A stretch of DNA of 64,000 bases, from assembly GCF_037042905.1 (NCBI RefSeq), contig NC_087254.1, forward strand, positions 10,044,001-10,108,000. Reading direction: 5' to 3'. Positions within the stretch are counted from its first letter, which is position 1. Every line of letters starts with the position of its first letter. A model generated the notes under the pieces. The model made no database searches and had not been told where the DNA came from. It saw only the letters and a list, made by a program, of their open reading frames with translations. The stretch comes from Lytechinus pictus. Taxonomy: Eukaryota. The position numbers and the translations under genes are program-made. This document shows positions 12,282-45,509 of the stretch, in pieces.

Positions 12282-14489
12282 ATGATGGATGCTAAGACAA
12301 AATTTTTTTTAATTATTCTAATCACATCATATATCCAGAATGCCAGATGTGATCTCTTTTTGGAATACAGTGGTAGCACCAGAGCCGAGGTTAGCATTGG
12401 TACCGTTGCAGCGTTTGAATGTTCCTCGTCATCACGAATCTCTGAAGGCAAATTGCGAACCGGTCGGATTGAATGGGGCAGAAACACAAGATACTCGGTA
12501 TCTACTCAAGTCATTGCACGGTGGACAAATGAGAATGGAATTGAGATCTTAGTCGATAACTCCGATGAACGATACAATATTGAAGGTGGAATCTTATCAA
12601 ATGGACGTTTCAGACAATATCTGACTATTCGAAAAGTTCAACGGATTGACCAGACCGATAGTACTGGGTATTACTGTGCTTTATTCAATTCTTCAGAGAG
12701 TATGTTGGTTAAATCTGGATACGCTCCATTGACTGTCAAATATCCTCCTGCAGAACATTACCCTCTTTGTACCGCGACACCAAATGACATCACCAGAGAA
12801 GTAATGCTTGAGTGTGCATCTGAGAAAACTACTCCAGATGTAACTGTACAATGGTATAAGGACGGTGAGAAGGTGTCAGATGCCCATCCAAGTGGTTACA
12901 AAATGAAATCGACCTATGAGGCCCGTGAAGATGAATTACACGGCGAATTCGAATGCCGACTATATTACGAAGACGGAGCTGATGTTGAGGTTCGTCGATC
13001 CTGTACATTCAGTAAACCTCGAGTGGCTATTTTAAGGATGGGAGGGGAAACTCTAAATGCAGAAAGTATATATCATGCATTTTCTGTATCTAATCCACCT
13101 CTCACATCCGACATCAATTGCACACTGGAAGCATCTTCAGACACTTCTCAACGTTTCGATAAAGAGTTTCCTGGTTATGGGGTGGCAGCCGTTGGACCTG
13201 TAGCTCCAACCGATAATGGTAGCACACTGGTGTGTCAGGCCAAAAATGTTTTCGGAACTGAAGATGCCAGGATGAGAGTATACAGTCCAAGCGATAACCA
13301 GGATGGAGAAACTACTATCCCGTCCGTTGTAACCAGTTATATGCCAGGCGGTCAAGTTCTCCAAGCCACAATTTGGCCCAAAGTACTAGAAATAATTCCT
13401 GGAGAGAACGCGACGTTTGTGTGTAGCTACAGCCTTACCATCCACTCGCATGTTACGGCACAAGTAGAGATCAAATGGGAACATGACGGCACCATTACTA
13501 CTGAGACAGAAGAGAATGTCCTTTTCATAACCAATGCAGAGTATGAAGATTTCAAAGAGACATTGATAACTTGCGTTGCTTCTGTAATTACCGATGACCC
13601 AATGATCAATACGGTTCCTGAACGTAGTTCTGCAACAGTTCGAGTCGGCAAAGCGAGTCCTTGCGACCCCAAACTATTATCTTCAAGTTCGAGGCAAGGA
13701 CAGTCCCAGACCAATATGAAATCATATTATATCGCCGGCATAATCGTTTTGGCCGGATTAGTTTTCATATTGATAATCGCTTTAATGTTTGTGGTGGTTA
13801 GAAAACAGAAACATCAGAAGAAACCTCGCTCTGACTCTGAACAATCTTCCAGCTCTCAAGTCACCTACCGTGCTGATTCTGCCTCTGCAGAAGAAAGACC
13901 TGACAATAGAATCGTCCGTCAAGCATCCATCCAGCGAGCATTACCGGCCGAACCAAATGAACCCGCACCAACCACGACACTCCGATCCGTTGTGACATCA
14001 CCTTCTCCAGCCACTTTGACATTAATCAATGATCCTGACAGACACATGCTGGAATCCATCTCCAGTTGCAACACCTTTAATACAACCACTACGGATCTTC
14101 CATACCAGGAGATGGTGGGCGATACTGGCATCAGCAAGAGCCGCCACGGAAGTGTCTCGAGCAACGTCAATTTCCAACGCCACGTCCCTCTTGTCCGCAG
14201 TCTCTCCATTCCTGCATCGATGATCCCTGTTCCAAATGGAGGCTTCTTGCCTTCAATTGCTGGTGACCATCCTGGTATCCAACGTACGGTGAGCGAAGGT
14301 GCTGATGACGACCCTTACGAAGATCCCGATGCTATTCGAGAGCGTCGTCGGACGAACCGAGCTCCGAACAACGATTACCAGTCGACAACCAGTGGCTTAA
14401 CGATAATGTCCATGGCAATTCAGAATAAGAAACTAGCGTCCCAGTATGTCAACTCATCGCTTACGGATGATTCTGTTTTCCTTGTTTGA
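12282..14489 (+). CDS. Intronless type I membrane IgSF receptor, copy 1 (SP, 4 Ig-like domains, TM, Tyr-motif tail), 735 aa
   Basis: Hydrophobic N-terminus. V-type FEC..IEW..YLTI..GYYC; LEC..QWYKDG..FEC; SNPP..DNGSTLVCQAKN; GENATFVC..IKW..LFI..ITC. TM YYIAGIIVLAGLVFILIIALMFVVV (13725-13799) followed by RKQKHQKK. Open frame kept in the paralog. Confidence 0.93.
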   Translation: MMDAKTKFFLIILITSYIQNARCDLFLEYSGSTRAEVSIGTVAAFECSSSSRISEGKLRTGRIEWGRNTRYSVSTQVIARWTNENGIEILVDNSDERYNIEGGILSNGRFRQYLTIRKVQRIDQTDSTGYYCALFNSSESMLVKSGYAPLTVKYPPAEHYPLCTATPNDITREVMLECASEKTTPDVTVQWYKDGEKVSDAHPSGYKMKSTYEAREDELHGEFECRLYYEDGADVEVRRSCTFSKPRVAILRMGGETLNAESIYHAFSVSNPPLTSDINCTLEASSDTSQRFDKEFPGYGVAAVGPVAPTDNGSTLVCQAKNVFGTEDARMRVYSPSDNQDGETTIPSVVTSYMPGGQVLQATIWPKVLEIIPGENATFVCSYSLTIHSHVTAQVEIKWEHDGTITTETEENVLFITNAEYEDFKETLITCVASVITDDPMINTVPERSSATVRVGKASPCDPKLLSSSSRQGQSQTNMKSYYIAGIIVLAGLVFILIIALMFVVVRKQKHQKKPRSDSEQSSSSQVTYRADSASAEERPDNRIVRQASIQRALPAEPNEPAPTTTLRSVVTSPSPATLTLINDPDRHMLESISSCNTFNTTTTDLPYQEMVGDTGISKSRHGSVSSNVNFQRHVPLVRSLSIPASMIPVPNGGFLPSIAGDHPGIQRTVSEGADDDPYEDPDAIRERRRTNRAPNNDYQSTTSGLTIMSMAIQNKKLASQYVNSSLTDDSVFLV

Positions 14490-15661
14490 GAGAGTGACGA
14501 CTTCAACATTCATCTTTTTTTCACCTCGTTAAAATACCATGATTATCGGAGATTTCTTACATTCCAGGAGGATATCAATAGCAACGAAGCATATACATTG
14601 TGAGAAATTCTGTTTTCTCGAAATATTATTATGCTGATATTATTGTTATGGCATTAAATGTGTAATAGCACCAAAATTATCATTATCGAAAGTTGATTTT
14701 GCCAGAGCAATAACAAAGATGATGACAGAGGTGGTGACGACAAAGATGGCGGTGGTTTTGATAAGGATGGTGATCATAGCAACGAAGAAGAATCGGAGTG
14801 ATGCATTCATTATAATGACAGTGACGACGACAGTCTTACGATGACGAAAGTGATAACGATAATGGTGATGGCGACGACTATAATGATTGTGAGAACTATA
14901 TCAGAAGAATAAGTAAGAAGAAGTTAAAATAATTTTTTGAGGACAGAATAGACATCGAAAAAAGACTTTGTTGTAAGTCATATTAATTTCCCTAAACATG
15001 TTTGGGAATTAAGATCGTTCTCTAATCTTTGTGATTTCTTATTAAACATTATACTATAAAGGCGAACATTTTTAGAACTTAAGACCAGTTGTAACTTATA
15101 TAGGCCTACCAGTTAGGTGCTTGTTTCTTCGAACATGACTAATTTCTTCTTTCAAAAATGTATACTTATATGCATAGTTGTGAAATAATGCTATGTATGT
15201 TCTTCTTGATGTAAAAGAGTGAGTAAGAGACAGTGCTTACCTCTTCGTAATATAATTTAGTTTACATATTTTTATATGTAATGACAAGTTTTAGAGCTGT
15301 TTGGAGAATACATATACATTTTTTTTTATGTCTATTATTTCTTCTTCTAAAGAGATATGTTTAATCAACCACATATGCAGGAGACCTTACAATTCAAACT
15401 CAGATTGATCTTATGTTGTGTATTTATCCGATATATCAAAATATGATCGATCGCGATTTCAATTTCAGTTTGATTCAAATTTATCTCAAATCTTAGACGA
15501 GTCCTTGAGGTCAATGCTAGGATTGGGTCAGATTTGACTTTATTGCAACTCTTAGACGGGTCCCTGAAACAGTTCGATTCGAATTCAGAGCAGCTCTTAA
15601 ATCATCAGCCTGGTCTCTGATCTTCAGAGTAGGTGGATGCATCGATGAGAGAAATAGTTAA

Positions 15662-16147
15662 AGGGATGGTCCAGGCTGGAGATATTTCTATCTCAATAAA
15701 TAGAGTAAAATTCACACAGCAAAATGCTGAAAATTTCATCAAAATCGGATAACAAAGTTATTGAATTTTAAAAATTTGCATTATTCCGGTGTAACAGTTC
15801 TAGTCATGTCTTTTTGAATATTCATTAGGTGGGCTGATGATGTCATATCCCAACTTGTTCTTTTGTATTTTATTATATGAAATAAGGTTTATTCAACACT
15901 TTTCTACCAAGAACTTAAACAATTTGATTAGGTACATTAGTTATTTATTGCCGCAACCTATTTCATCATAACGGAGACACACCATTTACACATTTATGAA
16001 AAAATGAAACAAAATATTGATAAACTTTAAAGTTCAATAACTTTGTTATTTGTTATCTGATTTTGATGAAATTTTCAGCATTTTGCTCTGTGAAATTTAC
16101 CGTATTTATTTAAATATAAATATTTTCAGCCCGGACGTACCATGCCT
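15662..16147. mobile_element. TTAA-flanked non-autonomous DNA transposon (Kolobok-like)
   Basis: ttaa|AGGGATGGTCCAGGCTG ... CAGCCCGGACGTACCATGCCT|ttaa with long imperfect TIRs. Absent from the paralogous flank. Confidence 0.75.
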
Positions 16148-17299
16148 TTAAAGACAGAAACCAATAATCATTATCATTAATGCATTTCCGCGACTGCTAT
16201 TAGGGGCGCTGTTAAGATCCATTGTAGATAGAAGTTTCATTCGGTGAAGGACTATAATAAGGTGTGAATTATACTATTAGTAATGGAAGAATAATCACCG
16301 CAAAGCTCTTCGTGCAGTTTTGATAACCAAACTATACTGGTACTTTATTTCAACAGTAAAATAATTGATGTTTAAACAATAATCAGTTAATTTCTGCAGT
16401 AACGAATGAAGAACTTAAATAATAAATCAAAAATATATTATTTTATAATATTTCATTGTGAATTTCAGTGATGGCAGGGCAAAACAAATGGGATCTCTCA
16501 TATCGGTTTCAATCACTTGTTCTCACACCTAGAATGTTATATATAGGCTTACATTACCGTACTAATTACGGAATATTTTTTTTCAGGTGATGACTATCAT
16601 GGTGCCGAAGGGGGATTACGAATTAATAGCCTGATACATTTGTTCAGTAATTGTGTGTCGATTTTCTTTCATTTATTGAATTAAAAAGGTAAAATGTAGG
16701 GGGTATAGAATATTTTAAAAGGTTCGTTCTATAATATGAATTTACCTTTTTTATGTTTGTAGAGGGGGCAATACAGAAATAAAATAATGAAAAAAGTATA
16801 TATTTTAGATATTAATAAAATGTCAGAAATTATTTAATTTAGAAGGTTACAGAATAGTTCAATTTGAATTAATCTAGATATTTTAAGAACTAGTGGTCAC
16901 ACTTCCTCTGTCTTGCATTTAGATAGTGTGACTGTTGACATATTTCAGCACTCACAATCGACAAAAGAGGAATGTTTACATATTATATGAATATTGAACG
17001 GCAACAATAAATGTACATACACAATGTTGAATGTTTGTTGGACAAGACACAGACCAATGTGAATATTATAATAAATTTAGAATGATGTGTTTACTCTTTA
17101 TATTATTCTCATATCATTAATAGAGCACTTTGCTGTTACAACGTGCTTTAATTATTTTCACTCTATTAATTCAACGATTAATATAAAGGTTTTTTTAATT
17201 TCATTTTAAAAAAAATGAAGATTGAAATATGCACTTAAAGATCGTGTTGCGAAATCGTAGGTCTTCTATCAAGCAATTAATGTTTGTTAAAATGAAAAG

Positions 17300-17590
17300 T
17301 ATGATAATAATAATTATAATAATACTCGGTTCTTTTATAGCGCATCACACATAGCAGATTGCATGTCTGTATGCACTAAAAGTATAGGACAAGCAAAAAG
17401 TGAAAAAATAAGGAACATGTACATACAATTCAATTCACTGGAAAATGATAATAAGTGTTAAAAAGGTATCTCTTAAGAGAAACTTCGAATTTATCTAAGT
17501 TATTTTGGCATTTCATGGAATCAGGAAGTACATTCCACAGTAGCGGAGGTGTGTGAAAAGGAACGTTCACCGTATGATTGTGCCTATGTT
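17300..17590 (-). mobile_element. 3' end fragment of an L2/CR1-type LINE
   Basis: Minus-strand LLWNVLPDSMKCQNNLDKFEVSLKRYLF (typical ORF2 C-terminus), followed by GCGCTATAAAAG and a (TAT)n tail. Confidence 0.75.
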
Positions 17591-17907
17591 GAGATGGAAG
17601 GAAGAAAGATATGACATCCGTGCACATAGAATGTCTAATCAATTGTTTGTATTAAAAAAATAGTTACACTTTATTTGTAGAACAAGAATTGTCAAGATAC
17701 ATTAATGACTCTGGCAGTGTTACAGATACACACTGCATGTATTTAGTGCACTTATCTGTCTGAGTAATAATAATCAAAGCAATTTGATTCTATTTTGTAT
17801 AGAGGTTTGCGTTCCACGCACTCTAAAAATACTGAGTGAAATTATACCAAATGTTGAGTAGAAAGGGAACATGCATGTTTGCTGCCCTTTGCTGGGTTTT
17901 TTTTTCC

Positions 17908-18465
17908 CGCATACATTCGTAATTCCGAAGGTTCGGATATTCCGAAGGTTCGTTATTCCGAAGGTTCGTATTTCCGAATGTTCGTAATTCCGACGGTTCG
18001 TTAGTCCGAAAACGAAATGGGGTTCTTAATTCCGAAGGTTCGTTAGTCCGAAAACGAAGTGGGGTTCGTAATTCCAAAGGTTCGTTAATCCGAAAACGAA
18101 ATGAGATTCGTAATTCCGAAGGTTCGTTAGTCCGAAAACGAAATGATTAACGAACCTTATTTCGTTTTCGGACTAACTAACCTTCGGAACAACGAACCTT
18201 ATTTCGTTTTCGGATTAACGAACCTTCGGAACAACGAACCTTATTTCGTTTTCGGATTAACGAACCTTCGGAACATCGAACCTTATTTCGTTTTCGGATT
18301 ATCGAACCTTCGGAATAACACCACAAATGTTCGGATTAACGAACCCTTTTACGTTTTCGGATTAACGAACATCGAGGTATAGGCAATTTACGTGTTTCGG
18401 AATTACGAACCTTCGGAATAAAGAACCTTCGGAATAAAGAACCTTCGGAATTACGAAGTGTAACC
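17908..18465. mobile_element. Foldback-type element made of two inverted arrays of ~16-bp and ~39-bp subrepeats
   Basis: Left arm (ATTCCGAAGGTTCGTTAGTCCGAAAACGAA)n, right arm its reverse complement. Termini TTCGTAATTCCGAAGG / CCTTCGGAATTACGAA. Confidence 0.8.
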
Positions 18466-20362: not shown

Positions 20363-20368
20363 ATTAAA
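20363..20368 (+). terminator. Candidate polyadenylation signal of copy 1 (ATTAAA plus downstream GT-rich tract)
   Basis: Lies in a conserved block GCACAAAAT.TTGTATTTTA..CATTAAACA matched at 48870-48960 after copy 2. Confidence 0.4.
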
Positions 20369-23039: not shown

Positions 23040-23491
23040 TAATTAATCTTGTCTTGAATTCCACCAAGAAGCATCAATCTGACGGACTGCTCATTGGACA
23101 GACACAAATATTCTTTGTTATTCACTCATATCTATACGGGAATGGATCGTTCTATTTAAATGTAATTGAATTTTGTCATGATTAATCTTTTTATTTTACA
23201 CTTTGCTTTCCATACTTCACTTCCCATTTCTATGCCATTGTCACCTGTTCATCTCATTCCTTAGTTTATATATCAGATTCTATTGCCATTACAACTCCAC
23301 ATGTTTCTATTGTCTTCTCATTTATATTCAGAACATTCTTCTTCATTCATGACCTCGTGCTCATTGGTTTACCTTTCACCCTTAGTTCTTCCACTTTTCT
23401 TGATTCTTCTATTCTCTCTGTTTCTATTAGTTAAATTGGTTATACGAAATTATTTCTGAACATATTTGAATACGGTATATTATTTGTTTAA

Positions 23492-27352: not shown

Positions 27353-28871
27353 GTTGGTTATCTGTCATGCAACACATTCCATATAAATTTTGTTAGCAAA
27401 TAATAATAATAAAGGTTTAAAGAATTGCAAAAGCGATTAGTGAAAGGCCAGTGCCCAATCAGCAATTTCTTACATTTACATTGTAACTGGCAGGCTTGCT
27501 GATCAGGGTCCAATTTTTATAATGCACAAATAGAAATTCTCCTAATTGAAATGATTTTGCTTAGTTGTAGAGAAAAGTGATCGTCTAGAAATTCCTTCAA
27601 GAGCTTGAAATAATAATTTTTTATCATTTGAAAAGTACATGTAAACATAGGGTCATGTTAAGAAAAAAAAAGATAGAGGCACAATTTTTTGCTTCCATGA
27701 GAGCCTATAAGCTAAGCCATATAATCTTTTTTTAGGGATGAAATGTTTGTTGAATAAAATGTCAGCAAATTATGTCTTCTCTGTATGATATACGTACCCA
27801 ATCACTTCAGCCCCCCCCCCAAAAAAAAAAAAATATTAATAATAATACTAAATAAAAAATAAACCAATGAAAAAAGAATGAAATTACACAAATAAAGCAA
27901 TCAAATTTTGGAACAGAAATGTGCAGATTTATGCCAGCACACAAAGGACATATTTCATATTGAAAAAGGGTCACTTTTGTTCTGGGGGATTTCTATTTCG
28001 GGCAAGCCAGTGCCAACCCAAACCCCTTCCCATCGCCCCACGATTGAGCTGCCCCTGGATAAAGGAAAGTGCGCTCATTTTAAAATCCTTTACATAATAA
28101 CAGACTGACAATTTTTGACAAACTAGAAACAATAACTGTTTTTAATGCAAGTTCTCTCCAAAATTATAGTAGCCTAAATTTAGTGACTAGGCCTAGACTC
28201 TATATTTCAATGAAAACAAGTTAATTAGCTAAGCCTATGACGTCATATGGGGAGGATTTAGAGTCTAGGTTTTTACATTATTTATTCGTAGGCCTAGTCT
28301 TTTCCAGAGAGTTTGTGGGAAATAACTAAGTTAGCCTTACTCCTTAGCCTAGGACTCCAAAATTCCTACTAGGGTCTAGATCTACTTTCCACCATTTGTT
28401 TCGATCTAGAACAGATCGACCAGAGGGTCCCACAAAAATATGGCCAAACTGAGCAATCGGTCTAACTTCTTTCAGTTCAGGCTACCCAAGTTTCACCACT
28501 CCAGATCCCCTCTTATTAATTCCTTGCCACCCTCCTATCTGCCACTCTTGCTGCTGACAAAACGACTCAGTGCCTAGCTCTCATCTATTATAGACCCTAC
28601 TACTAAAACTAAAGTACTAGGCTAGGCTAGTCTATATCTTAATAATTCATCCCGGAATTCATCATATTCGTTCAGAGGTCTAACTTACATGTACTAGTGT
28701 TACTAACGTTGGACCTATGTGTAGACTCTAGACTACCGAGGCCTAACGTTAGACCAACAACAGGTCTAACTTTTGTTAACGTTACTTATATAGGTCTACC
28801 TAACGTTAGATCTAACTATAACTATAAGTAACGTTAGGCCTAATGTTACTGTTAGTTAGACTCTAAGTTAA

Positions 28872-29298
28872 AGATAAATGACAGTTGTGGTAACGATTTC
28901 AAAATGAGTTCGTACAGTCTACAGAATCCAACGAAATTACCACCAAAGTGTCTGTTTGTATATATAAAAAATATGTGCCAAAGGATTCCGGAAGAAATTG
29001 TGTAATTGCTGAGAAATTAGCAAATAAGCACGGGATTTGGGTCAAGGCAAGTGTCGGGCCGACATTCAAAGCAATAATTTTTAATAGTACACTGTCCCAC
29101 GTGCGCTTATCTGTGTTGGTGATCTTCAGTATGAACATTTTTCAGCGTAGATTTCAAGATTTCACAAAGTTCAGTTCATGTAACTGTACCATTATACCAG
29201 ATCTAGATCCTCGATAATATAGTGACAATTAAGCTCGGTTTTACACACTTTCTCGTGAAATCAGTGTTTCCTGCAACTAGGCCTACTTTCATTTATCT
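28872..29298. mobile_element. TTAA-type non-autonomous element (inverted relative to the copy at 61211-61605)
   Basis: Aligns end to end with the reverse complement of 61211-61605; ttaa on the left, tcaa on the right. Confidence 0.85.
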
Positions 29299-30406: not shown

Positions 30407-30547
30407 TGTAGTATCGAACTATCGATACAGAGTGTGTTGATCGATAATCAGCAGAGAGATCGAGAGGTGATTAAAGAAACGGAACAATCAAAGTCAGATC
30501 AGCTGTTCATGTAATTTTGTTGATGGTGAACTTAATCAGTTATTATA
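30407..30547 (+). repeat. 5' LTR (141 bp)
   Basis: Direct repeat of 41124-41264, starts TGTAG, followed by the PBS. Confidence 0.95.
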
Positions 30548-32708: not shown

Positions 32709-35700
32709 GCATACTCTTATGTCCAGATGTAATAACATTAAATTGCATTATACAACATATCCCCCCAAGTATATCTGTTTGGTTCAGTTCAATATCCAAT
32801 TTTAAACGCAATAGGTTTTGATGTGTTACCAGTTCATGCAATCAGCTTTAAGTCAGCTTGTTTGTATTTACTAGTCTATCTTCATATTACATGGTCAATT
32901 GGATGGGCTGTTTCACAAGTCTTCCTGAACGGGTGCGATATCCCTGCGTATTGTTAGGGTAGTGACCTACGTCGCAATGTTCCTCGGGAGGTGGAGAATT
33001 GGGACGCGCCTCAGGATAATTGGTGTTGTCATCATCAAGAGGGATAGAGGAGCGCAGTTGGCGGGTGATCACCCGACCATGTCGGGCTTGGTCTCGGATC
33101 CACACTCCGTCACCTTGCTGGAGTGTTGGTAGGATACGGGCTCTATGTCGTTGGTTGTAGTGCTTGGTCTGGTTCAAGCAGCACCTTTCTTCTTTCTCTC
33201 TCACATTCTCCAAGTCTTGTGCACTGACTTGTGGCATCAGAGTTTGGGGTATAGTGGGAAGGAGGGTCCGTAGTCTCCATCCCATAAGCAATTCACATGG
33301 TGCTAAGCCGTTCTGGAGGGGCGTAGAACGGTAACGCAGCAAGGCAAGGTCAATGTCATCGTTCTTCTTCAGCATGGACTTCACTGTTCTGACACCCCGC
33401 TCTGCTTCCCCATTGGCCTGAGGATATCTTGGTGAACTAGTGGTGTGGACAAATCTCTACTCCTCTGTGAATCGACGGAATGTCTCATTTGCGAATTGTG
33501 GACCATTGTCTGAAATCACAAGATCAGGTATACCATGTAAATACCATGCAAATATCTCTTTCAGAGACTTGATCACCGCCTCTGAAGTGTGTCCATGTAG
33601 CCGTTTTTACCTCGATCCAACGTGAATAGTAGTCCACCACAATCAGGAACACCTTTCCCTGATATTCAAAGAGGTCCATCCCTAGCTTCTCCCAAGGGCG
33701 AACTGGGAATGAGGATGTCATCAGTGGTTCTTTAGTCTCCTGACTATGGATGGCACACCTAGTACATCTAGAGATCATCTTCTCCACTGACTTTCAGAGG
33801 CCTGGCCACCAGACCGATTGTCGAGCCCTGGCTCTGCACTTTGTGATGCCTTGATTACCTTGATGTAAACGCTCTAGGATGTCCAATCTCAGAGCCCTTG
33901 GGAATGACTAGTCGTTCATCAAACAGGAGCAAGCCATCGACCACACTGAGGTGTCCTCTCTGTTCAAAGTACTGTTTGATGAGAGGGTTCTGGGGCATAT
34001 AGTCAGGCCAACCTTTCTCACAATATTCACTGATCAATGCACATTCCTCATCAAGCCTTTGTGCCTTTCTAATCTCTTCCAGTCTCTGGTCCGTTGCAGG
34101 TAAGTTGTGGGTAGAAGAGGATACAAATACTTCAGTCAGTTCATTAAGCTCAATGTCCTCAGCCTGTGGGAATGCTACTGGGGCTCTTGATAAAGTGTCT
34201 GATGTGACTTGTTGTTTTCCAGGCACATATTCTGTGGTTGCATTATACCTCATTAGCCTTAGTCGAAACCTCAGTACCCTCGGGGGCAGTTTTGATAGTT
34301 TCTTCGTGTTGAGTAATGCCATCAATGGCTTGTGGTCTGTTTCGATCTTGAAGGTCATGCCAAGAACGAAGTCATTGAAATTTTCACATGCCCAAGTAGC
34401 TGATAGAGCCTCCTTCTCTATGACTGCGTACCGCTGCTCTGTCTCTGTCACTACCGAGACGCATAACACACCGGTCTTCGGCGACCATCCTTCTGAGTTT
34501 GGAGTAGAATTGCTCCCATTCCGGTTGACGATGCATCAGTGGCGATTGTTGTAGGCAATGATGGATCATAGTGGGCCAGAACTCAGTGGAATCTGTCAGT
34601 ATTGCCTTTATTCCCTCAAAAGCTTGCTGTTGTGGTCTATCCTAGCACCATCCATTATCCTTCCTCAAGAGTGCACGTAGTGGCTCATTCATTGTGGAAA
34701 AGTTGGGTAGGAATTTTCCAACTTGGTTGACCATACCCATGAACCTCTGAAGTTCTGTGATGGTCCTCTGTGGTGGAAATTCTCGGATGGCTCTGGTTTT
34801 CTATGGATCAATCTGCACTCCTGTCGAATCCACAATGTGCCCAAGGAACTTCAATTTCTCTTGTGAAAATTCACACTTGTTGTTGAGCGTCAGTCCAGCC
34901 TTCACAAATTGCTGCAATACTGCCCTCACTCGAGAGTCATGTTCTGCCTTCGTAGCTCCATGAATCAAAACATCATCCACGTGGCAGATGACTCCATCCA
35001 ACCCCTCTATGATACCAGACATCGTGCGTTGGAATATCTCAGGGGCAGACGTGATTCCGAATGGTAGTCTATTGAAGCAAAACCTACCAAACGGCGTGAT
35101 GAAGGTTGTCAAGAGCTTTGAGTAATCGTCCAAAGGCAGCTGCCAAAACCCGCTGTTTGCATCCAATTTGGTAAAGATAGTTCCTCTACCTAGTTTGGCT
35201 AGGCTTTCGTCAACTGATGCCATTGGATGGACTTCACGCTCGACCGATTTGTTGAGTTGTGTAAGATCTACACAAATCCTGATTGCCCCGCTAGTTACCA
35301 TACCAGAACACCACTTGGTAGGCTCAGTGACCGGAGAAATTACCCCATGTTCTAACATTAAGTCAATTTCTTTCTTCACTTTGGGCAAAAGGGGATGGGG
35401 TACCCTCCGTGGTGTGTAGAGACATACTGGTTTTGCTCCTGGAGACAGTGTAATGTGATACTCCTGTTCTAGTTTCCCCAGTCCACTGAACAGTTGTGGA
35501 AATTCAGCTCTGAAATCCACCTTTCCTTCCTTTTCCTGTTCAAGTGTCTCCACCTTTGTCAACAGATTCAGCTATTCACATGCTCTCTTGCTAAGCAATG
35601 AACAATCTTGATTCCTGACTATGTAAACAGTTTCTGACACTTCTCTGCTTTTGTTTTGGAGAATTACTTCCATCTCTCCCAAAACATTTAGTGTAGTTTT

Positions 35701-36733
35701 CCCTGGTCCACATAGCTTTCGCCTTGCTGGTTTCAACCTTCTTCCATGAAGCCATTGGCGCTCATCTGACAGTACAGTCATCGCAGCACCACTGTCCAGT
35801 TTGAAGTGGGTTGTGTTTTCATCGACATCAACGTCTGCACTCCAATAATTCTTTCTGTTGTCTTGAACCTCTCCCAAGAAAACAGTTTCCACATCAAGAG
35901 AATCCTCTAATTCATGTACCGTGGTCCTTACTCCACTTCGGCAAACTGAGCGAAAGTGACCAGATTTTCCGCACTTGTGACATGTTGCATCTCGAGCAGG
36001 GCACTTGGCACGATCATGCCTAGATCGGCCACAAAACATGCAGCTCCCCTGTGTTTGATTTGCGAACTTCTCCTGGCTGCGTATTGGTCTGTCAGCTACA
36101 GTTCTTTGTCTTACTTGTTCTACTTGGGCAACATCCTGCATGCTTGATGGCTCACGATCACCTCGAACAACTGGTCTGTTCGCCTTGCGAGCCTCTGCCT
36201 GTCTGCTTACTTGGACAGCTTTCTCCAATATCAGGTCGTCCTTTGCCTGTAACTGATCCGACAAGCTATCATCTAGTACCCCCACAACAATACGGTCACT
36301 GATCAATTCATCTTTAGGTCATTGAACTCTTGGGCCAAGCCATATAAATCATTGATGAAAGCATCAATGCTTTCTCCCGGCTGTTGGCTACGTCTATTAA
36401 ACTTTGCCCGAGCAACAATTGTGTTCTTTCTGATGTTGAAGTGAGTTTCAAATGCTGCGACAACACTAGCGTACGTTGCCGTGTTTTCATCTATTCCCCG
36501 TGTCAGTATAATATCATCCGCGCAATCACCCATTGCATACAAAAACGTACTGACCTGTTCACCCTCCGGCTTCGCTGCGAGCCCCGATGCCGTCCGGTAT
36601 CGCTTGAATCTCGGTACCATTTCGGCCAAGCTTCGGCTTGATTTAGGCCAGCAACCTTCTCAAAAGACTCCGGCAATGGCAGTGATTTATCCATGATTCA
36701 CCTTTTTACCGCTGCCACCATATACAATTGGGT
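32709..36733 (-). mobile_element. Second Gypsy (Mag-like) inserted in reverse orientation into the host pol; LTRs mostly lost
   Basis: Minus-strand PBS TGGTGGCAGCGG (36720-36709), gag ATG at 36694, twin zinc knuckles CMFCG..H....C / CHKCGKSGHFRSVC, protease LDSGA, RT HVDD, RNase H, integrase, PPT TTGGGGGGATA (~32768-32758). Host ..GYFNP|KRQSEVIV.. rejoins across it. Confidence 0.92.
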
Positions 36734-37453
36734 AAACGTCAGTCAGAGGTTATTGTTCATGCAGGCCCACTTGGCCTCGGAGCGATTCTGGTTCAGCATG
36801 ACTCTTGTACGCAGTCAGTTATCCCAATCGCGTTAACTAGTCGCTCATTGACACCCGTAGAACAACGCTACTCGCAAACGGAGAGAGAGGCACTTGCCAT
36901 CACTTGGGCTGTTAGACATTTTCACATTTATCTGTATGGAGTATCATTCGTTGTGACAACAGATCACAAGCCTCTGTTTTCCATGTTCAACGATGCCAAC
37001 TCAAAGCCGCCAATCCGCATTGAACGTTGGTTACTTCGGCTGCAAGCGTACAATGTCAGGGTCCAGTACCACCCTGGAAAATTGAATCCAGCCGACTATA
37101 TGTCACGGCACCCGCGTCCTGCCCACAGTGAGGGATCATCAGCCGAAGAAGAAATCACAGAACACCATGTTTCGTTTATCGCAGCACACGCAATTCCAAA
37201 GACAGTCACGCATAAGGATATCATATCCGCAACAAGCACTGATGAAGCTCTTCAGAACTGTATGCGCGCTATCCAGGATGACAGCTGGGGTGATCTTCTA
37301 GCGTCTGCAGATGCAGCATTGCAGAGTGAGTACATGAAGCCTACATGAAATACGTGATCAACTTACCATAGCAGAAAATGGTAGCATTCTCTTACGTGAT
37401 CATCGCATCGTCATTCCACGCTCACTTAGACAAAGGCTCTCTTGCGTGAGAAG

Positions 37454-38920
37454 CACATTCAGCAATCATCAAACCTTTTTTGAAGAAATCAGGGTTGGAT
37501 GTAAATGACATCAGTAATTATAGACCGGTCTCAAACTTAACATTTCTAGGTAAACTCATCGACAAGGCGGCATGTACTCAACTAGCTGATCATATTGAAT
37601 CTAATAATATTTTTGATCCTGTCCAATCTGCCTATAGGCCAGGTCACAGCACCGAGTCAGCTCTGATCAAAGTAAAAAATGACATCATGTTTTCTCTCGA
37701 CTCAAATAATGTAGTTTTTATGGTGCTGTTAGATTTATCTGCCGCGTTTGAAACAATAGATCATAACATTTTCATATCTCGGTTATTCAATAGAATAGGC
37801 ATTAGGTCCACAGTCTTATCCTGGTTCCAATCATACCTGTCTGGATGGCCTTCGCAAGTTGATATTGATGGCACATTGTCAAATCCCATAACTCTAGAAT
37901 TTGGACTCCCTCAGGGGTCAATAGTCGGACCCATAGGCTACTCAATATATACTCTTCCAGTTGGTGATATCATCCGAAATCACTGTATCAATTATCATTT
38001 TTATGCTGACGACATACAATTATATGTTTCTTTTGATCCGAAGACTCCTGGAGCTCTCAATAATGCACTGGTTAAACTCCAGAATTGTATATCAGATATA
38101 AGACAGTGGATGATAGTGAATAAGCTAAAACTAAATGACAAAAAAAATGAATTTTTTGTAGCGGCCTCTACTTATAACTTGCGCAATCTTCCAAATGTTC
38201 AACTTGATGTTGATGGTACACTCATTAGACCATCAGAAAAAATACGAAACCTCGGTGTCATATTTGATTCCCGCATGTCAATGTCGTACCATATCTCTCA
38301 TATATGTAGCACAGTCACTTTTTATTTAAGGAACATTTCTAGAATCAGAAGGTTCATTGACCAGTCTGCCTGTCACAATGCTGTTCGTTCATTTATTGCA
38401 ATGGGCTCCTTTCTACAATTCCCTCTAATCAATTAATCCGTATTCAACGACTACAAACTTGGGCAGCACGATTAATTTTACAGGTTTCCCGATATCATCC
38501 TTCCCAACCACTCTTTAATTCTCTTCACTGGCTTCCTTTTGAACAGAGAATTACGTTCATATTACTCTTGATTGCCTACAAAACACTGAATAAACAGGCT
38601 CCACAGTATTTAAGTAACTGCTTGAATCTGTAAACACCAACTAGAGCACTTAGGTCGGCCAGTGATCACCTTCGCCTCACATATTCATTAACTCGTACAT
38701 TAGCTGGTGACAGAACTTTAACGGTGTCGGCTTCAAAATCCTGGAACGACCTGCCACTAATAATTAGACAGTCTCCAACATTCGCAATTTTCAAAAAGTA
38801 ATTAAAAACTCATCTCTTTCGTACTTTGTAGTTTTTAAAATATTACATTTAATTAATTCATTGTAAGCGCTTTGGGCCTAATGGGAAAGTGCAGTACAAA
38901 CAATAAGTAATAATAATAAT
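37454..38920 (+). mobile_element. 5'-truncated L2-clade LINE inserted in the host Gypsy integrase
   Basis: RT motifs NYRPVSNL, LDLSAAF, GLPQGS, FYADD, NLGVIFD. 3' (TAA)n tail. AAG on both sides. Host ALLREK|VWFPSID rejoins across it. Confidence 0.93.
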
Positions 38921-41123
38921 AAGGTGTGGTTTCCTTCTATTGATCGTATGACTGACCACACGATTCGCGATTGTTTATCTTGTCAGATGAACACTGTTGA
39001 CCATGCAAAAGAACCACTTCGAATGACTGAGCTTCCACAACAGCCATGGACCGAAGTTAGCGTAGACTTTGCCGATCATCCGAATGGTGATCACATGTTG
39101 GTAGTCATCGACGATTACTCACGTTTCGTAGAAGTAGAAATAGTTTCATCTACAGCAGCGAGTCAGGTCATCCCCAAGCTTGACCGAATCTTCTCAAGCT
39201 TTGGCGTTCTTTCTGTAGTCCGTACTGACAATGGCCCACCATGCATTCAACGGCGCAGAATTCAATCAGTTTGCTAACTACTTAGGATTCAACCACAGGA
39301 GAGTTACTCCGCGTTGGCCTCAAGCTAATGGTGAGGTCGAAATATTCATGCGAACTCTTAAGAAAGTCTACCGCTGTGCAATCGCAGAGCACAAGTGTTG
39401 GAAGCAGGAAGTATACAGGTTCTTGCGTAACTATCGCGCAACACCACACTCTACTACTGGTGGTCCTCCTGCGACTCTTCTCTTTGGAAGGCCATTGCGT
39501 GCACATCTTCCAGACGTAGTATCTCCGCAGATCCAACATGATCTACATTCTTCAGTTCGCAATCGCGATGAAGCCAAGAAACAACACATGAAAGCATACG
39601 ATGATGGTCGCGGAAAAACTCAGACATCGAGAATCGCAGTTGGTGATATGGTGCTTGTTCGCAGAGATGGAATGGTTCCAAAGCACCAGTCGCCATACCT
39701 CGCGCAACCATACAAAGTTGTGAGAAAGCGTGGATCTCGCATTACCGTCCGTTGTGCCAATCATTACATCACACGCAATTGTTCGCGATTCAAGTTGTAT
39801 GGTGGTCCAGCTCCACCATTTAGTCATGATGATGATGATGACATTGAACCTTGTAACATTCAAGATGCACAAAATGATCCAATGCCAGCGGGAAATCCGC
39901 AACCTGCTGTACCACGTCGCAATCCGCCTCGTGAGCGACGTCCCCCATTACGTTTTCGTGATTTTGTGCCTAACTAACTCGTAACTAATTGGTCACTTGA
40001 TTATGAATGCCATTATTTTACTAGATAATATGAAAGGTGGTTATTACACAGAAGTGTAGTTTGATGCATATTTTACTTACTTAAGGTTTCCTTAAATTTA
40101 CAACTGTTATAATTTTTAAATTGGTCAATGTTTAAAGGCACTTAAAGCTTACTTTGATTTTTCATGCAACATTTTCGTGTATATTTACAGTTTTATGCAT
40201 TATTTTGGATATCAGTAAATCAATTAGAAAACTCTTTGTATTAAACAACCATGAAAATAAATACACACACAAAAAAAATGAAATACCCCAAAGTATCTGT
40301 TATTTTGGAACACTGCTAAAGCAAGTATTTGTTTGATTTTAAGAAAAATCATAATAATTGTACTTTTCAGATTCTCATGTTGCAAACTCAATGTCATGCC
40401 TAATTGTGCATGAGCAGGAATGGTTGGAATTATTTGTGTTATTATTATGTGTCACACAGTTGGATTTATATGGACATACACTATGTTTTACATGGTCTAA
40501 TATTTGTATTTGTTTTCCACACGTTTTGAGCAGACCTTTGAGCAAACAAAGGTACACAGGTTTGATACTTATTGTTGTTTTAGATGTAACAAAGGAAAGT
40601 TTTTGAGGTATTACTTTGTTTTCACACTATCCAAAAAAAAGGAGGAAAAGGAAAAGAACAGGAAATGCAAGAAGTTTATTTTTTAGCTTAGTTTTAATTG
40701 TTATATTAATCACATCTTTTGGTATGCAAACTAAAATTACAAAAAAGCAAATTATGTTACAGTATATTATGTGTTTGAAATTTTGAAAGATACAATAGTA
40801 CTTTCTATGCAGCCACTTGCATCTAGTTTAATCTGTTTTATATTTTGCTTGTAAAATTTATTTCGAAGAAAACACAGCTCCCTGCATGCAGAGCAGAACA
40901 AAATAATTATAAATAAATGAATAATCCACACAAGAACAAAATTAATGTGTTGAATAATAAGCTTTATTCTTTATAGCTATTTGGTTATAAACAAAGAGAA
41001 TGATGTTAAATCAAAAGTACTTTGATAATTGCATTAATTTGATTTTTTTTTACAAGTTTAGAAGTTTTGAAGGTTACTCAGTTCATTTGACAGGTTTTAC
41101 ATTCTATCCAAGGTGAAGAGGAA

Positions 41124-41264
41124 TGTAGTATCGAACTATCGATACAGAGTGTGTTGATCGATAATCAGCAGAGAGATCGAGAGGTGATTAAAGAAATGGA
41201 ACAATCAAAGTCAGATCAGCTGTCCATGTAATTTTGTTGATCGTGAACTTAATCAGTTATTATA
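41124..41264 (+). repeat. 3' LTR (141 bp)
   Basis: Preceded by the PPT; direct repeat of 30407-30547. Confidence 0.95.
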
Positions 41265-41406
41265 GTAACATTATCGTGATCTAGCGGTATGATTCTCCTT
41301 AAATTTATGGGGGTGGCATGGGCGATGAGGTGATGGTGCCGGGCCAGAGTGTCCGAGGTTCGACCCCCACCCATGCCCTTCCCCCTTATCTTGCCATTCT
41401 GAGTAA

Positions 41407-41815
41407 AGGCGACCGCACACCTTACGATTGGTCTGCGACCCGATTTCAGAATAATATGTGATATAATTTGATGCTAATATTGAGACTTGGATTATCTTAC
41501 TGTGTAATGTTCTAAATCATCGTATGAATGTTCAAATCTGTGACTATGCTCTCATCCTTATTAGAATAAAAGCGAATTTAATATCTAGTCGTAATGACGT
41601 CATAGCAGTCGTACGATTGGCTACGATTTGAAAATAATTTGGCCTTTACTCCAAAATAAAGGCTTGCAATCTTTCAAAATGGTTATATTAGTATTCTTTC
41701 AATTAATTTTAACCTCAAATAAAATGATATGTTCTATTCAAATTTTCAGAAAATGAGCAAAATGCGATATGTTCCGAAATCGGATCGCGAACAGTCGTAA
41801 GGTGTGCGATGACCT
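41407..41815. mobile_element. Harbinger-type MITE
   Basis: taa|AGGCGACCGCACACCTTACGA ... TCGTAAGGTGTGCGATGACCT|taa. Confidence 0.8.
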
Positions 41816-41956
41816 TAAGGCAATTAAAAACGAATGTTGCATAGGATAGCATAAACAACAGCTCAGTAGCATAAATAAAATAATATACTACACCAAGTAA
41901 AAAGGTAAATACTATAAACACAGCACAATATCAGCAAGACAATCGTGGAAAGACCG

Positions 41957-42155
41957 GACATGGTGGCCCAGTGGTAGAGCGTAGGCCTCATGAACGGANN
42001 NNNNNNNNNNNNNNNNNNNNNNNNNNNNNNNNNNNNNNNNNNNNNNNNNNNNNNNNNNNNNNNNNNNNNNNNNNNNNNNNNNNNNNNNNNNNNNNNNNNN
42101 NNNNNNNNNNNNNNNNNNNNNNNNNNNNNTTATCTATCATCATTATTATTATTAT
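41957..42155 (+). mobile_element. tRNA-derived SINE interrupted by an assembly gap (N at 41999-42128)
   Basis: A box TGGCCCAGTGG followed by AGAGCG before the gap; (TAT)n tail after it. Confidence 0.55.
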
Positions 42156-42804
42156 CAAAAAGTAAAAAAAACATTTGAAATTGAAAAGGTGGACAGTAAA
42201 CCTGTCAAATACGATCAGAGAACCTTTAAGGTGATAAGTATAATTGCAGCACAATATACACTAATGGATTGTCATGACAAAAAATATATCCGATTCGATT
42301 GAAAATGACAGGGACGAAAACTGATAAAGTATATAACATATTGAATGTAAATTATAGAAAAAGTAAAACACTTAGGCTTGCAACAAAGTTTATTGAATCA
42401 TGATTATTAAGAATAGAATAAGTTAGAATAAGACGAAAACAAAACAATAACATCGGAAAACAAAACAAGAAGAGGAAAGAAACCATTAAAAACGTGCTTT
42501 TAAACACGTATCAAAGCGTTGACGTAACGTGAGTCATTTACTTCAAAGCGAGGGAATTGAAAAGCTTGTAAATGAAACTAATTCTCCTTTTAAACTCTCA
42601 TTTTGGTTTTGATGAGATTAAGAATTATAAAGTTAGTTATTTCCTAACTGGACTGCAGTGCTGATTGCACTGGTTCCCAACCACTAGATATTGATGCACA
42701 AATTATAGTTGTTATTTTTTCTATATGTAAGCATTACTTTGAATGGCGTTAAAGGGACATGAATATTTTTTCCACCTCACGACGATGATAGACAATATCA
42801 TATG

Positions 42805-42900
42805 TATAATGCAAATCTTTCTTTTGGAAAGGCGCATGCGCAAACTTTAACCAATAACAATCCAGCCTTGGTTGTTGGTAATTGATGTGGAAAGAATAGT
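42805..42900 (+). promoter_or_regulatory. Putative promoter of Ig receptor copy 2
   Basis: Perfect palindrome GCGCATGCGC at 42832-42841 and CCAAT at 42851; homologous to 11790-11880. Confidence 0.55.
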
Positions 42901-43307
42901 CTAAGCGGGATTGATCTAGAGTTACTTTATTGAAGATTTTCTGAAAACACTTTAAATAGGTAGGGGAATTTGTGCCAAACAAAGACAATCAAATTTATGC
43001 AGGTCAGTTGAAATGCATTTTTTTAACATGAACTTATTATTCTTCTTTAAGTAATCATATTATATTATAGAAGAATGATACGTTTAATTTTAAGTAATAT
43101 CGTAAACGATTCCCCCATACACGCATGTTTTAATGATACATCTGTGACATGTCTCCTGATGCAGACTACGACCAATATGTACTTCCTTGTTTCAATGGGA
43201 TATTGTTTTACCGACATAATCAACACAAGTCTTACACTATTATAAAGGATGCAACTTATTCAAAGCAGGCGCAGATTTCAGACATACAGGTGTTCTCACA
43301 ATCTCAA

Positions 43308-45509
43308 ATGATGGATGCTAAAAGAAAGTTATGTTTGTTTATTTTCATCACATCATATATCGGATATGCCAAATCCAGCCTTTATATGGCCTATAGCGGG
43401 AACACTGCTGAGGTTAGCCTTGGCACCCGTGCAGTGTTTGAATGTTCCTCGTCATCGCAAATCTCTCAAGACAAATTGCGATCCGGTCGGATTGAATGGG
43501 GCAGAAACACGAGATACTCGGTGTCTGCTCAAGTCATAGCACGGTGGACAAATGAGAATGGAATTGAGATCTTAGTCGATAACCCCGATGACCGATACAA
43601 TATTGAAGGTGGAATCTTATCCAACGGACGTTTCAGACAATATCTGACTATTCAAAAAGTTCAACGGATTGACCAGACTGATAATACTGGGTATTACTGT
43701 GCTTTATTCAATTCTTCAGCGAGTATGTTGGTTAAATCTGGATATGCTCCATTGACTGTCAAATATCCCCCTGCAGAACATTATCCTCTTTGCACAGCGA
43801 CACCAAATGACATCACCAGAGAAGTAACACTTGTGTGTACATCAGAGAAAACTACTCCAGATGTAACTGTACAATGGTATAAGGACGGACAGAAGGTGTC
43901 AGATGCACATCCGACTGGTTACAAAATGAAATCGACCTATGAGGCCCTTGAAGATGAATTTCGAAGCGAATTCGAATGCCGACTACATTACGTGGACGGA
44001 ATTGATGTTGAGGTTCGTCGATCCTGTACATTTAGTAAACCGCGAGTGGCTATTTTAAGAATTGGAGGAGAATCTCCAAATGAAGAAAGTACATATCATG
44101 CATTTGCTGTATCTAATCCCCCTCTCACATCCGACATCAACTGCACGCTGGAAGAATCTTCAGACACTTCCCAACGTTTCGATAAAGAGTTTCCTGGATA
44201 TGGGGTGGCAGCCGTAGGACCTGTAGCTCCAACTGATAATGGTAGCACACTGGTGTGTCAGGCCAAAAATGTCTTCGGAACTGAGGATGCCAGGATGACA
44301 GTATACAGTCCAAGCGATAACCAGGATGGAGAAACTACTATCTCATCCGTTGTGACCAGTTATATGCCAGGCGGTCAAGTTCTCCAGGCCACAATTTGGC
44401 CCACAGAACAAGAGATAATTCCTGGAGAGAATGCGACGTTTGTGTGTAGCTACAGCCTTACCATCCACTCGCACGTTCCGGCAAAAGTAGAGATCAAATG
44501 GGAACATGATGATACTGTTACCACCGAGACAGAAGATAATATCCTTTTCATTACTAATGCAGATTATGAAGATTTCACAGAGACATCGGTAACCTGCATT
44601 GCTTCTGTAATTACCGATGACCCAATGATCAATACGGTTCCTGAACGCAGTTCTGCAACAGTTCGAATCGGCAAAGCGAGTCCTTGCGACCCAAAACTAT
44701 TATCCTCAAGTTCGACGCAAGGACAGTCCCACACCAATATGAAACCCTATTATATCGCCGGCATATTCGTTTTGGCCGGATTGGTTCTCATATTGATTAT
44801 CGCTCTAATGTTTGTAATGGTGAGAAAACAGAAACATCAGAAGAAATCTCGCTCTGACTGGGAACAATCTTCCAGATCTCAAGTTACCTACCGTGCTGAT
44901 TCTGTCTCTTCAGGAGAAAGACCTGACAACAGAATCGTCCGTCAATCATCCATCCAGCGAGCATTACCGGCCGAACCAAATCAACCCGCACCAACCACGA
45001 CACTCCGATCCGTTGTGACCTCACCTTCTCCAGCCACTTTGATAATCAATGATTCTGGCAGACACAGGCTGGAATCCATCTCCAGTTGCACCACGTGTAA
45101 TACAACCACTACGGATCTTCCATACCAGGAGATGGTGGGCGATACTGGTATCAACAAAAGCCGCCACGGAAGTGTCTCGAGCAACGTCAATTTCAAACGC
45201 CACGTCCCTCTTATCCGAAGCCACTCTGTATCGGCAACAATGATACCTGTTCCGAATGGAGGCTTCTTGCCTTCAACTGCAAATGACCATCCTGGTTTCC
45301 AACGTACGGTGAGCGAAGGTGCTGGTGAAGACTGCTACGAAGATCCTGATGCTATTCGAGAGCGTCGTCGGGCGAACCGAGCTCCTAGCAACGATTACCA
45401 GTCGACAGACAATGGCTCATCTATAATGTCAATGACAATGCAGAATAAGCAGCTAGCATCCCAGTATGCCAACTCATCGCTTACGGATGATTCTGTTTTC
45501 CTTGTCTGA
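43308..45509 (+). CDS. Intronless type I membrane IgSF receptor, copy 2, 733 aa
   Basis: Colinear paralog of 12282-14489 with two 1-codon indels. Start set at MMDAK (43308) because it aligns with copy 1 and precedes the signal peptide. Confidence 0.93.
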   Translation: MMDAKRKLCLFIFITSYIGYAKSSLYMAYSGNTAEVSLGTRAVFECSSSSQISQDKLRSGRIEWGRNTRYSVSAQVIARWTNENGIEILVDNPDDRYNIEGGILSNGRFRQYLTIQKVQRIDQTDNTGYYCALFNSSASMLVKSGYAPLTVKYPPAEHYPLCTATPNDITREVTLVCTSEKTTPDVTVQWYKDGQKVSDAHPTGYKMKSTYEALEDEFRSEFECRLHYVDGIDVEVRRSCTFSKPRVAILRIGGESPNEESTYHAFAVSNPPLTSDINCTLEESSDTSQRFDKEFPGYGVAAVGPVAPTDNGSTLVCQAKNVFGTEDARMTVYSPSDNQDGETTISSVVTSYMPGGQVLQATIWPTEQEIIPGENATFVCSYSLTIHSHVPAKVEIKWEHDDTVTTETEDNILFITNADYEDFTETSVTCIASVITDDPMINTVPERSSATVRIGKASPCDPKLLSSSSTQGQSHTNMKPYYIAGIFVLAGLVLILIIALMFVMVRKQKHQKKSRSDWEQSSRSQVTYRADSVSSGERPDNRIVRQSSIQRALPAEPNQPAPTTTLRSVVTSPSPATLIINDSGRHRLESISSCTTCNTTTTDLPYQEMVGDTGINKSRHGSVSSNVNFKRHVPLIRSHSVSATMIPVPNGGFLPSTANDHPGFQRTVSEGAGEDCYEDPDAIRERRRANRAPSNDYQSTDNGSSIMSMTMQNKQLASQYANSSLTDDSVFLV

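Follow-up and report, generated by a model that had tools for sequence, protein, structure and literature searches.

An intronless tandem pair of four-immunoglobulin-domain receptor genes in Lytechinus pictus and the echinoderm family to which it belongs

Two receptor genes in one window

We analyzed a 64,000-nucleotide stretch of the Lytechinus pictus genome (NCBI RefSeq assembly GCF_037042905.1, contig NC_087254.1, positions 10,044,001 to 10,108,000 of the forward strand), referred to here as the window. It contains two long open reading frames (ORFs), ORF1 (copy 1) and ORF2 (copy 2), each encoding in a single exon a predicted cell-surface receptor of the immunoglobulin superfamily (IgSF). 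An earlier note, written by a model from the sequence alone, had pointed out the pair and had suggested a lineage-specific, possibly retroposed and then duplicated family of immune, allo- or cell-cell recognition receptors. Our analysis places the two genes in a family found across the echinoderms. They are tandem paralogues of this type I IgSF family, and on balance we think it probable that they encode adhesion or signaling receptors that dock SH2 adaptors on four tyrosines of the cytoplasmic tail.

Both frames are intact and lie on one strand. Their starts are 31,023 bp apart, which bears out the 31 kb given in the earlier note. A run of N falls in the spacer, ~680 bp 5' of position 42806, ~1.0 kb 5' of 43149 and ~1.2 kb 5' of 43305 (Table 1). 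It interrupts neither frame and is outside the detectable duplicated block; because it lies within the spacer, the 31-kb spacing is an estimate only. BLASTP aligned the two products with 627/735 identities and 2 gap positions, that is, with exactly the 108 differences over 735 amino acids (aa) that had been counted by hand. The long open frame of ORF2 runs from 43149 to 45509 (+ strand), and homology with ORF1 begins at the methionine of MMDAK, at 43305. The in-frame extension upstream of this methionine has a counterpart neither in copy 1 nor in any homologue, and the database models of copy 2 begin at MMDAK or MDAK. The extension is therefore probably not coding.

Both products are already on record. 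The databases hold a protein identical to the 735-aa product of ORF1, and a 99% allele carries the name LOC129269816. The exact 733-aa product of copy 2 is also present, in a cluster named LOC129269817. Both entries are annotated "uncharacterized protein", and no paper citing the family was found when six of its LOC identifiers were queried in a searchable library. The statement that the genes have no described orthologue thus held.

The encoded proteins have the layout that had been read from the sequence, a signal peptide, a V-type Ig domain, three more Ig domains (D1 to D4 in all), a transmembrane (TM) segment and a tail, and on this Pfam, AlphaFold2 and hydropathy agree. The Pfam V-set match, in ORF1 only, covered aa 35-150 at 26.3 bits against a cut-off of 26. 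Ig_3, Ig_2 and C2-set_2 matched aa 165-236 and ig matched aa 370-428; D3 had no Pfam match. An AlphaFold2 model of the ectodomain, built on a 13-sequence alignment, contained four beta-sandwich domains with a mean predicted local distance difference test score (pLDDT) of 77, D3 included at 85-91. Modelled alone, D1-D2 reached a pLDDT of 91. D1 superposed on the V domains of antibodies, T-cell receptors and CD8 with Z scores of 14-15.7 and a root-mean-square deviation of 2.0-2.3 Å over ~115 residues. The invariant Cys pairs and the Trp of the Ig fold are conserved across the family alignment, and the family signature VKYPPAEHYPLC stands before D2.

The signal peptide and TM segment were assigned from hydrophobicity. 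For the latter, the mean Kyte-Doolittle hydropathy peaks at 3.3 at aa 486 and is followed by a basic stop-transfer sequence, RKQKHQKK. No other segment differs as much between the two proteins as the signal peptide (9/23). With a predicted Ig fold, a signal peptide and a single TM segment, the ORF1 and ORF2 proteins are, as judged from sequence and model, type I IgSF membrane receptors. The unpaired Cys461 of the stalk may permit covalent dimers.

The cytoplasmic tail appears disordered and is without a catalytic domain. Four of its tyrosines are nearly invariant: Y608 (YQEM), Y679 (YED(P/L)), Y699 (NDYQ) and Y722 (Y(A/V)N). These tyrosines and their flanks are kept across echinoids, including Diadema, despite an overall identity of only 35-40%. 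The tail also carries an NGGF block and a C-terminal -VFLV. Asteroids keep two tail blocks, including YQDL...NEYQ. A homology search with the tail only found no homologue beyond the family, and neither the ORF1 nor the ORF2 tail contains a pair of immunoreceptor tyrosine-based inhibitory or activation motifs (ITIMs or ITAMs).

The duplication extends beyond the coding sequence (CDS). Collinear blastn high-scoring segment pairs (HSPs) defined a duplicated block around each gene. The two copies are 85% identical over the CDS and ~550 bp of 3' sequence, and 69-74% identical in the upstream and downstream flanks. Between the flanking HSPs, copy 2 is shorter than copy 1 by ~900 bp. Because non-coding flanks are homologous too, the pair is, on these alignments, the product of a DNA-level tandem duplication of ~5-6 kb and not of two retropositions.

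Table 1. Positions of the genes, protein segments and other features (positions are those of the window unless a contig is named)
Feature	Position	Strand	Basis or remark
ORF1, copy 1 (LOC129269816)	12282..14489	+	single-exon CDS, 735 aa plus stop
Signal peptide, aa 1-23, core FFLIILITSYI	12282..12350	+	read from sequence
D1, V-set Ig, aa 24-152, Cys47-Cys132	12351..12737	+	Pfam V-set, AlphaFold2 pLDDT ~90, V-domain superposition
D2, C2-type Ig, Cys 163, 178, 225 and 241 invariant	12738..13016	+	Pfam Ig_3/Ig_2/C2-set_2
D3, Ig-like, aa 246-335, Cys280-Cys318, F-strand motif LVCQAKNVFG	13017..13286	+	AlphaFold2 beta-sandwich
D4, Ig, aa 363-456, Cys381-Cys431	13368..13649	+	Pfam ig, AlphaFold2 pLDDT 60-80
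Stalk with nearly invariant unpaired Cys461	13650..13730	+	conservation
TM segment, aa ~484-507	13731..13802	+	hydropathy
Cytoplasmic tail, aa 508-735 (~228 aa)	13803..14486	+	conservation
ORF2, copy 2 (LOC129269817)	43305..45509	+	single-exon CDS, 734 aa from MMDAK; RefSeq model 733 aa
ORF2 in-frame upstream extension	43149..43304	+	probably not coding
Duplication unit, copy 1	11793..17781	+	collinear blastn HSPs; CDS, ~490 bp upstream and ~3.3 kb downstream
Duplication unit, copy 2	42806..47547	+	collinear blastn HSPs
Tailless family member	contig C10:10916774-10918245		three-frame reading; 13-nt and 4-nt insertions and one TAG in this assembly
Very high-copy repeat	15575..16147		3' flank of copy 1 only
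Nested retrotransposon debris in spacer	33855..39977		RVT_1 and RT_RNaseH domains, both strands
Assembly gap (N run)	41999..42129		intergenic; outside both frames and the detectable duplicated block

Distribution, origin and age of the family

The L. pictus genome contains four family members, all on contig C10. They are the pair, a tailless copy ~870 kb away and, ~10 kb further, LOC129269093, a paralogue with 36-41% identity and a single-block CDS. The LOC129269093 record matches a locus of the window's own assembly at 100% identity. An exhaustive profile search recovered full-length relatives in Diadema and Strongylocentrotus, and more distant members of the same layout in Apostichopus japonicus, Acanthaster planci and Asterias. 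The last two carry the automatic names 'roundabout homolog 3-like' (Acanthaster planci) and 'nephrin-like' (Asterias). Common to all members are a D1/D2 junction of the form V-(K/Q/E)-Y-P-P-x-x-x-(Y/F)-P-x-C, a D2 with four cysteines and the tail block Y-(E/Q)-D-x-(D/E)...R...N-(D/E)-Y-Q. On the sequences recovered, the family is echinoderm-wide, with members in echinoids, asteroids and a holothurian. It is thus not lineage-specific, as had been supposed; only the duplication that gave ORF1 and ORF2 is confined to Lytechinus, where L. variegatus shares it.

The intronless state is as widespread. The CDS of Diadema antillarum is one block, with 2163 nt for 720 aa plus stop. In Acanthaster planci (DF978544.1, 5541-24620) there are four intact intronless paralogues of 572-576 aa, 58-77% identical, in a tandem array of ~19 kb. 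These four group together in the tree, so that this tandem expansion was independent. The public Acanthaster gene model appears to merge several tandem paralogues into one 'gene'. In the three lineages with loci examined (L. pictus, Diadema and Acanthaster), no spliced parent or relative was found. Since an intronless CDS is common to Diadema and Acanthaster, any retroposition predates the echinoid/asteroid split. A recent retroposition was rejected, given the duplicated flanks and the intronless state common to echinoderm classes. The scenario of retroposition followed by duplication consequently survives in part: there was a local duplication, made at the DNA level with its flanks, and any retroposition belongs to a much older period.

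There are one-to-one orthologues of both copies in L. variegatus, LOC121423026 and LOC121423186, the latter corresponding to copy 2. Protein divergence between L. pictus and L. variegatus is 7% per orthologue pair, compared to 14-15% for the cross-pairs. In a maximum-likelihood tree, the split between ORF1 and ORF2 falls after the S. purpuratus lineage branched off. Together, the tree and the one-to-one orthologues make the duplication Lytechinus-specific and older than the split of L. pictus and L. variegatus. Two S. purpuratus genes of the ORF1/ORF2 clade, LOC105437568 and LOC105447289, are annotated as proteins of 421-445 aa without D4 and tail and with a hydrophobic end; either the long form was lost in this species or the models are incomplete.

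The two copies differ by 0.207 synonymous (dS) and 0.071 nonsynonymous (dN) substitutions per site, giving a ratio (omega) of 0.345 (Nei-Gojobori). By region, omega was 0.34 for D1, 0.32 for D2, 0.19 for D3, 0.33 for D4 and 0.52 for the tail, with 0.29 for the ectodomain; D3 had the lowest value among the Ig domains, and no region exceeded 1. By this measure, both copies have been kept under purifying selection since the duplication. Between orthologues, D1 diverged by 9-10% compared to 7% overall, and it is not hypervariable.

The tailless member ends in a short hydrophobic stretch that is possibly a glycosylphosphatidylinositol (GPI) signal. It is intact both in L. variegatus, at 492 aa, and in the L. 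pictus RefSeq entry XP_054763529.1. In this assembly it may be a pseudogene, because its insertions shift the frame and it contains a TAG. Nucleotide divergence between ORF2 and the tailless locus is 2-3% over aa 51-200 (D1 and the start of D2), 7-11% over D3-D4 and 38% over the stalk and TM segment. The mosaic hints that the binding end has undergone gene conversion.

A profile of D1-D2 matched at least 20 further L. pictus loci, on contigs C2, C3, C4, C5, C6, C11 and C14. Each match spans the domain boundary within one open frame of 320-1100 aa. These additional intronless IgSF loci, which include KirrelL and Kirrel2L, are only distantly related to the four-member family. A separate observation on contig C4 (5620820-5624362, ORF 1258-2913) is an intronless V-set IgSF receptor of 551 aa. 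Its tail contains two ITIM-like motifs (LVYADL and IEYASI), like the VYADL...YAKL of published Kirrel2L and Hypp1164.

Known relatives, proposed role and alternatives

KirrelL, Kirrel2L and Hypp1164 are reportedly Ig-domain proteins specific to primary mesenchyme cells. The gene kirrelL encodes an Ig-domain transmembrane protein needed for skeletogenic cell fusion and is intronless in all echinoderms examined, and retrotransposition has been proposed as its origin (Khor & Ettensohn, eLife 2022, PMC8903837). Intronless echinoderm Ig receptors, with retrotransposition as the cause, are therefore already published in the case of KirrelL. A literature search on intronless IgSF genes of sea urchin found nothing relevant beyond that paper.

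The KirrelL group resembles the family described here in several ways. Its three proteins are likewise echinoderm-restricted type I IgSF members with an intronless CDS and a V-type D1 followed by a C2-type D2, and they share the D1/D2 junction L-T-V-x-x-P-P-x-x-x-Y/F-P-x-C and the four-Cys D2. We located the L. pictus orthologues of all three by short peptides, as long open frames on contigs C5 and C4, whereas the four-member family is on a different chromosome (C10). With BLASTP, ORF1 was 28% identical to KirrelL over 96 aa and 27% identical to Kirrel2L over 109 aa, and there was no match to Hypp1164. In contrast, alignments within the KirrelL group span 258-391 aa. Given the short, low-identity alignments of the one kind and the long alignments of the other, ORF1 and ORF2 are not strict members of the group. 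Six tail or junction motifs (KYPPA, NGGF, YQEMVG, NDYQ, YANS and YEDPD) are all absent from the published KirrelL, Kirrel2L and Hypp1164 sequences, and the tails are on these grounds unrelated. There are four Ig domains in our family and apparently three in KirrelL, by reading of the published sequence alone. The four-Ig family is plausibly a sister branch of the KirrelL group.

Receptors of the Kirrel/Neph and nephrin type (SYG-1/SYG-2, Roughest/Kirre, Sns/Hibris) resemble ORF1 and ORF2 in being type I proteins with several Ig domains and a tail whose tyrosines dock, or in our case would dock, adaptors. In nephrin and Neph1, such tails recruit Nck, p85 and Grb2. Kirrel has five Ig domains and nephrin has eight plus FN3, compared to four and no FN3 here, and the Kirrel and nephrin genes of other animals are multi-exon. 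A fold search with the whole ectodomain returned Kirrel3, Kirrel1/2 and SYG-1 among the best matches (E ~1e-12, 14-17% identity). SYG-2 was a match in a profile search of the PDB, where the matches were generic IgSF and lay at the D1/D2 junction. Kirrel3, BCAM, MCAM, nectin-1 and antibody chains all scored with E values of 1e-12 to 1e-14 at 13-19% identity, and SIRP-alpha also matched; no one of them stood out. Because these matches are to generic Ig only, we assigned no family by fold.

Two further comparisons are with nectins and with Toll-like receptors (TLRs). Nectins and CADMs have the same V-C2-C2 start, a single TM segment and a hydrophobic C-terminus that might serve as a PDZ ligand, and nectin-1 D1-D3 aligns with D1-D3 of the family at 17-19% identity. 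Unlike them, the present proteins possess a further Ig domain, D4, and their 228-aa tail has other motifs; the E/A-x-Y-V afadin motif is absent and -FLV is not family-wide. The TLR-type arrays of sea urchins resemble the pair in having intronless coding exons in tandem. They differ in number (hundreds compared to four copies), in fold and in signaling tail, and the present family differs also in its purifying selection and one-to-one orthology.

How the receptors might work follows from the conserved parts. The ectodomain, and mainly its membrane-distal V domain, would bind a partner located in the matrix or on a second cell, after which Src-family kinases would phosphorylate the four conserved tail tyrosines. 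The phosphotyrosines would then recruit SH2 adaptors of the PI3K p85 type (pYxxM), the Crk/Nck type (pYxxP) and the Grb2 type (pYxN), so that cell contact would be coupled to actin and PI3K/Ras signaling in the style of nephrin and Kirrel. The motifs pYxxM, pYxxP and pYxN are established SH2 preferences, and the adaptor assignments are drawn from this general specificity and from the analogy with nephrin and Neph1. Ligand binding by D1 and tyrosine phosphorylation are likewise inferred.

Several observations weigh against a docking receptor of this kind. Fold searches with the whole ectodomain and with D1-D2 cannot separate the IgSF subfamilies, and antibodies dominate the matches. The tyrosine motifs are short and could have other roles, for example in endocytic sorting. 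The C-terminal -FLV is limited to the Lytechinus clade, where the end reads -SVFLV, and to its closest kin; elsewhere in the family the ends are -HYANS or the like. Last, two confirmed ribo-depleted RNA runs, sampled at ~6%, gave a few CDS reads in one case and none in the other.

Contigs of run X1, a contig run that we only guess to be RNA, were colinear with the genome at copy 1 from 12291 to ~15500 and again from 16147 to 16477. Each piece had at most 4 base differences, with one in-frame 3-nt indel and no joints, and coverage of ~1 kb upstream of copy 1 was zero. These pieces look like an unspliced copy 1 transcript that matches the RefSeq allele. Raw RNA reads in the copy 1 CDS were mostly oriented as expected for + strand RNA. 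For copy 2, the k-mer share was 0.52 in run X2 and 0.97 in run X15, the latter a run of unspecified kind. There were no copy-2-type letters among the rows listed when reads were aligned to copy 1 at 88% likeness, so expression of copy 2 is read from the k-mer shares. Transcription is likely, but low in the sampled runs.

We considered whether the family acts in the manner of KirrelL itself, as an effector of filopodial contact and of fusion or tight adhesion in a syncytial or epithelial cell type. The intronless CDS, the V-then-C2 layout, the PPxxxYPxC junction and the four-Cys D2 shared with KirrelL, Kirrel2L and Hypp1164 would fit such a role, as would the retrieval of the KirrelL and Kirrel2L loci by the D1-D2 profile and the automatic name 'nephrin-like' of starfish members. 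However, the similarity to KirrelL is just 28% over 96 aa, the tails are unrelated and the number of domains differs. A fusion or adhesion effector of this type therefore seems unlikely to us.

A diversified innate-immune or allorecognition family, in which intronless tandem copies evolve fast for variable ligands like the sea-urchin TLRs, is a distinctly improbable explanation. It would account for the intronless tandem layout and the independent expansion in Acanthaster. It also has on its side that D1 is a true V-set domain, that D1 and D4 are slightly the fastest parts of the ectodomain between orthologues, and that constraint is somewhat looser on the signal peptide and tail. Purifying selection (omega at 0.29 over the ectodomain, 0.34 in D1 and below 1 in every domain), a V domain that is not hypervariable and a genome complement of only four members, one of them frameshifted, all speak against it. 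Divergence is evenly spread and not concentrated in D1, and orthology with L. variegatus is strictly one-to-one. ORF1 and ORF2 have no ITIM or ITAM pairs, and the strong conservation of the tail across echinoids is typical of a fixed signaling role. The likening of the pair to an expanded innate-receptor array does not agree with these data (four members; omega 0.35 between the copies). In sum, what the earlier note had got right were the intron-free coding regions, the tandem paralogy, the IgSF receptor class and the undescribed status of the genes; its interpretation erred about the age of the family and about how the local duplication took place, and its immune analogy is probably mistaken as well.

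We hold to be just as improbable a paired-receptor or decoy system, in which the tail-bearing genes would signal and the tailless, possibly GPI-anchored paralogue would present almost identical binding domains but would not signal. Tailless paralogues with a short hydrophobic end occur in L. pictus, L. variegatus and S. purpuratus, and the mosaic between ORF2 and the tailless locus, if due to gene conversion, would keep the binding ends alike. On the other side, the tailless copy is disrupted in this assembly, by the 13-nt and 4-nt frameshifting insertions and the TAG, and the mosaic could equally stem from a staggered duplication history. A broader version is that the four-Ig genes are the conserved core of a large radiation, specific to echinoderms, of intronless V-C2 receptors (at least 25 L. 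pictus loci), in which tail-bearing and tailless forms with a common, gene-converted binding end would be paired signaling and decoy receptors in the recognition or fusion of cells. This is quite unlikely. If true, the radiation would be an invertebrate parallel to the paired Ig receptors of vertebrates, with KirrelL as its only studied member.

That the genes are recently retroposed, functionless copies, processed pseudogenes that kept an open frame by chance, is hardly credible: the intronless CDS, the abundant retrotransposons between the copies and the low expression signal could be read in this way, but both 2.2-kb frames are intact with an omega of 0.35 and intact L. variegatus orthologues, the intronless state is ancestral across classes and the duplicated block reaches into non-coding flanks.

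The pair and its relatives form an uncharacterised new subfamily within a known kind of gene. They define an echinoderm-wide and conserved family of IgSF receptors, marked by a distinctive signaling tail, for which the current database labels ('uncharacterized', 'nephrin-like', 'roundabout homolog 3-like') are inconsistent. The intronless state noted for KirrelL extends to a far wider set of echinoderm Ig receptors, which have repeatedly expanded in tandem. Lineage-specific families of IgSF receptors are common, and current concepts are unchanged. Because L. pictus is genetically tractable, the pair is a practical entry point to the roles of such receptors in development, adhesion or immunity.

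Repeats around the pair

Retrotransposon insertions pushed the two copies 31 kb apart. On the minus strand, the nested debris in the spacer contains a gag-like zinc-knuckle ORF, RVT_1 and RNase H. On the plus strand it contains a second RNase H, an RVT_1 of the long interspersed nuclear element (LINE) type and an integrase-like C-terminal ORF without a Pfam match. A tRNA scan found no tRNA, although a tRNA-like string adjoins the N run.

For the repeat in the 3' flank of copy 1, depth was ~10^4 in the contig runs, and raw RNA reads of both strands numbered in the hundreds. Its many opposite-strand joints suggest a hairpin or an element like a miniature inverted-repeat transposable element (MITE). 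In addition, positions 28868-29279 and 61224-61609 form a 413-bp inverted match with 84.5% identity, presumably two copies of a dispersed repeat.

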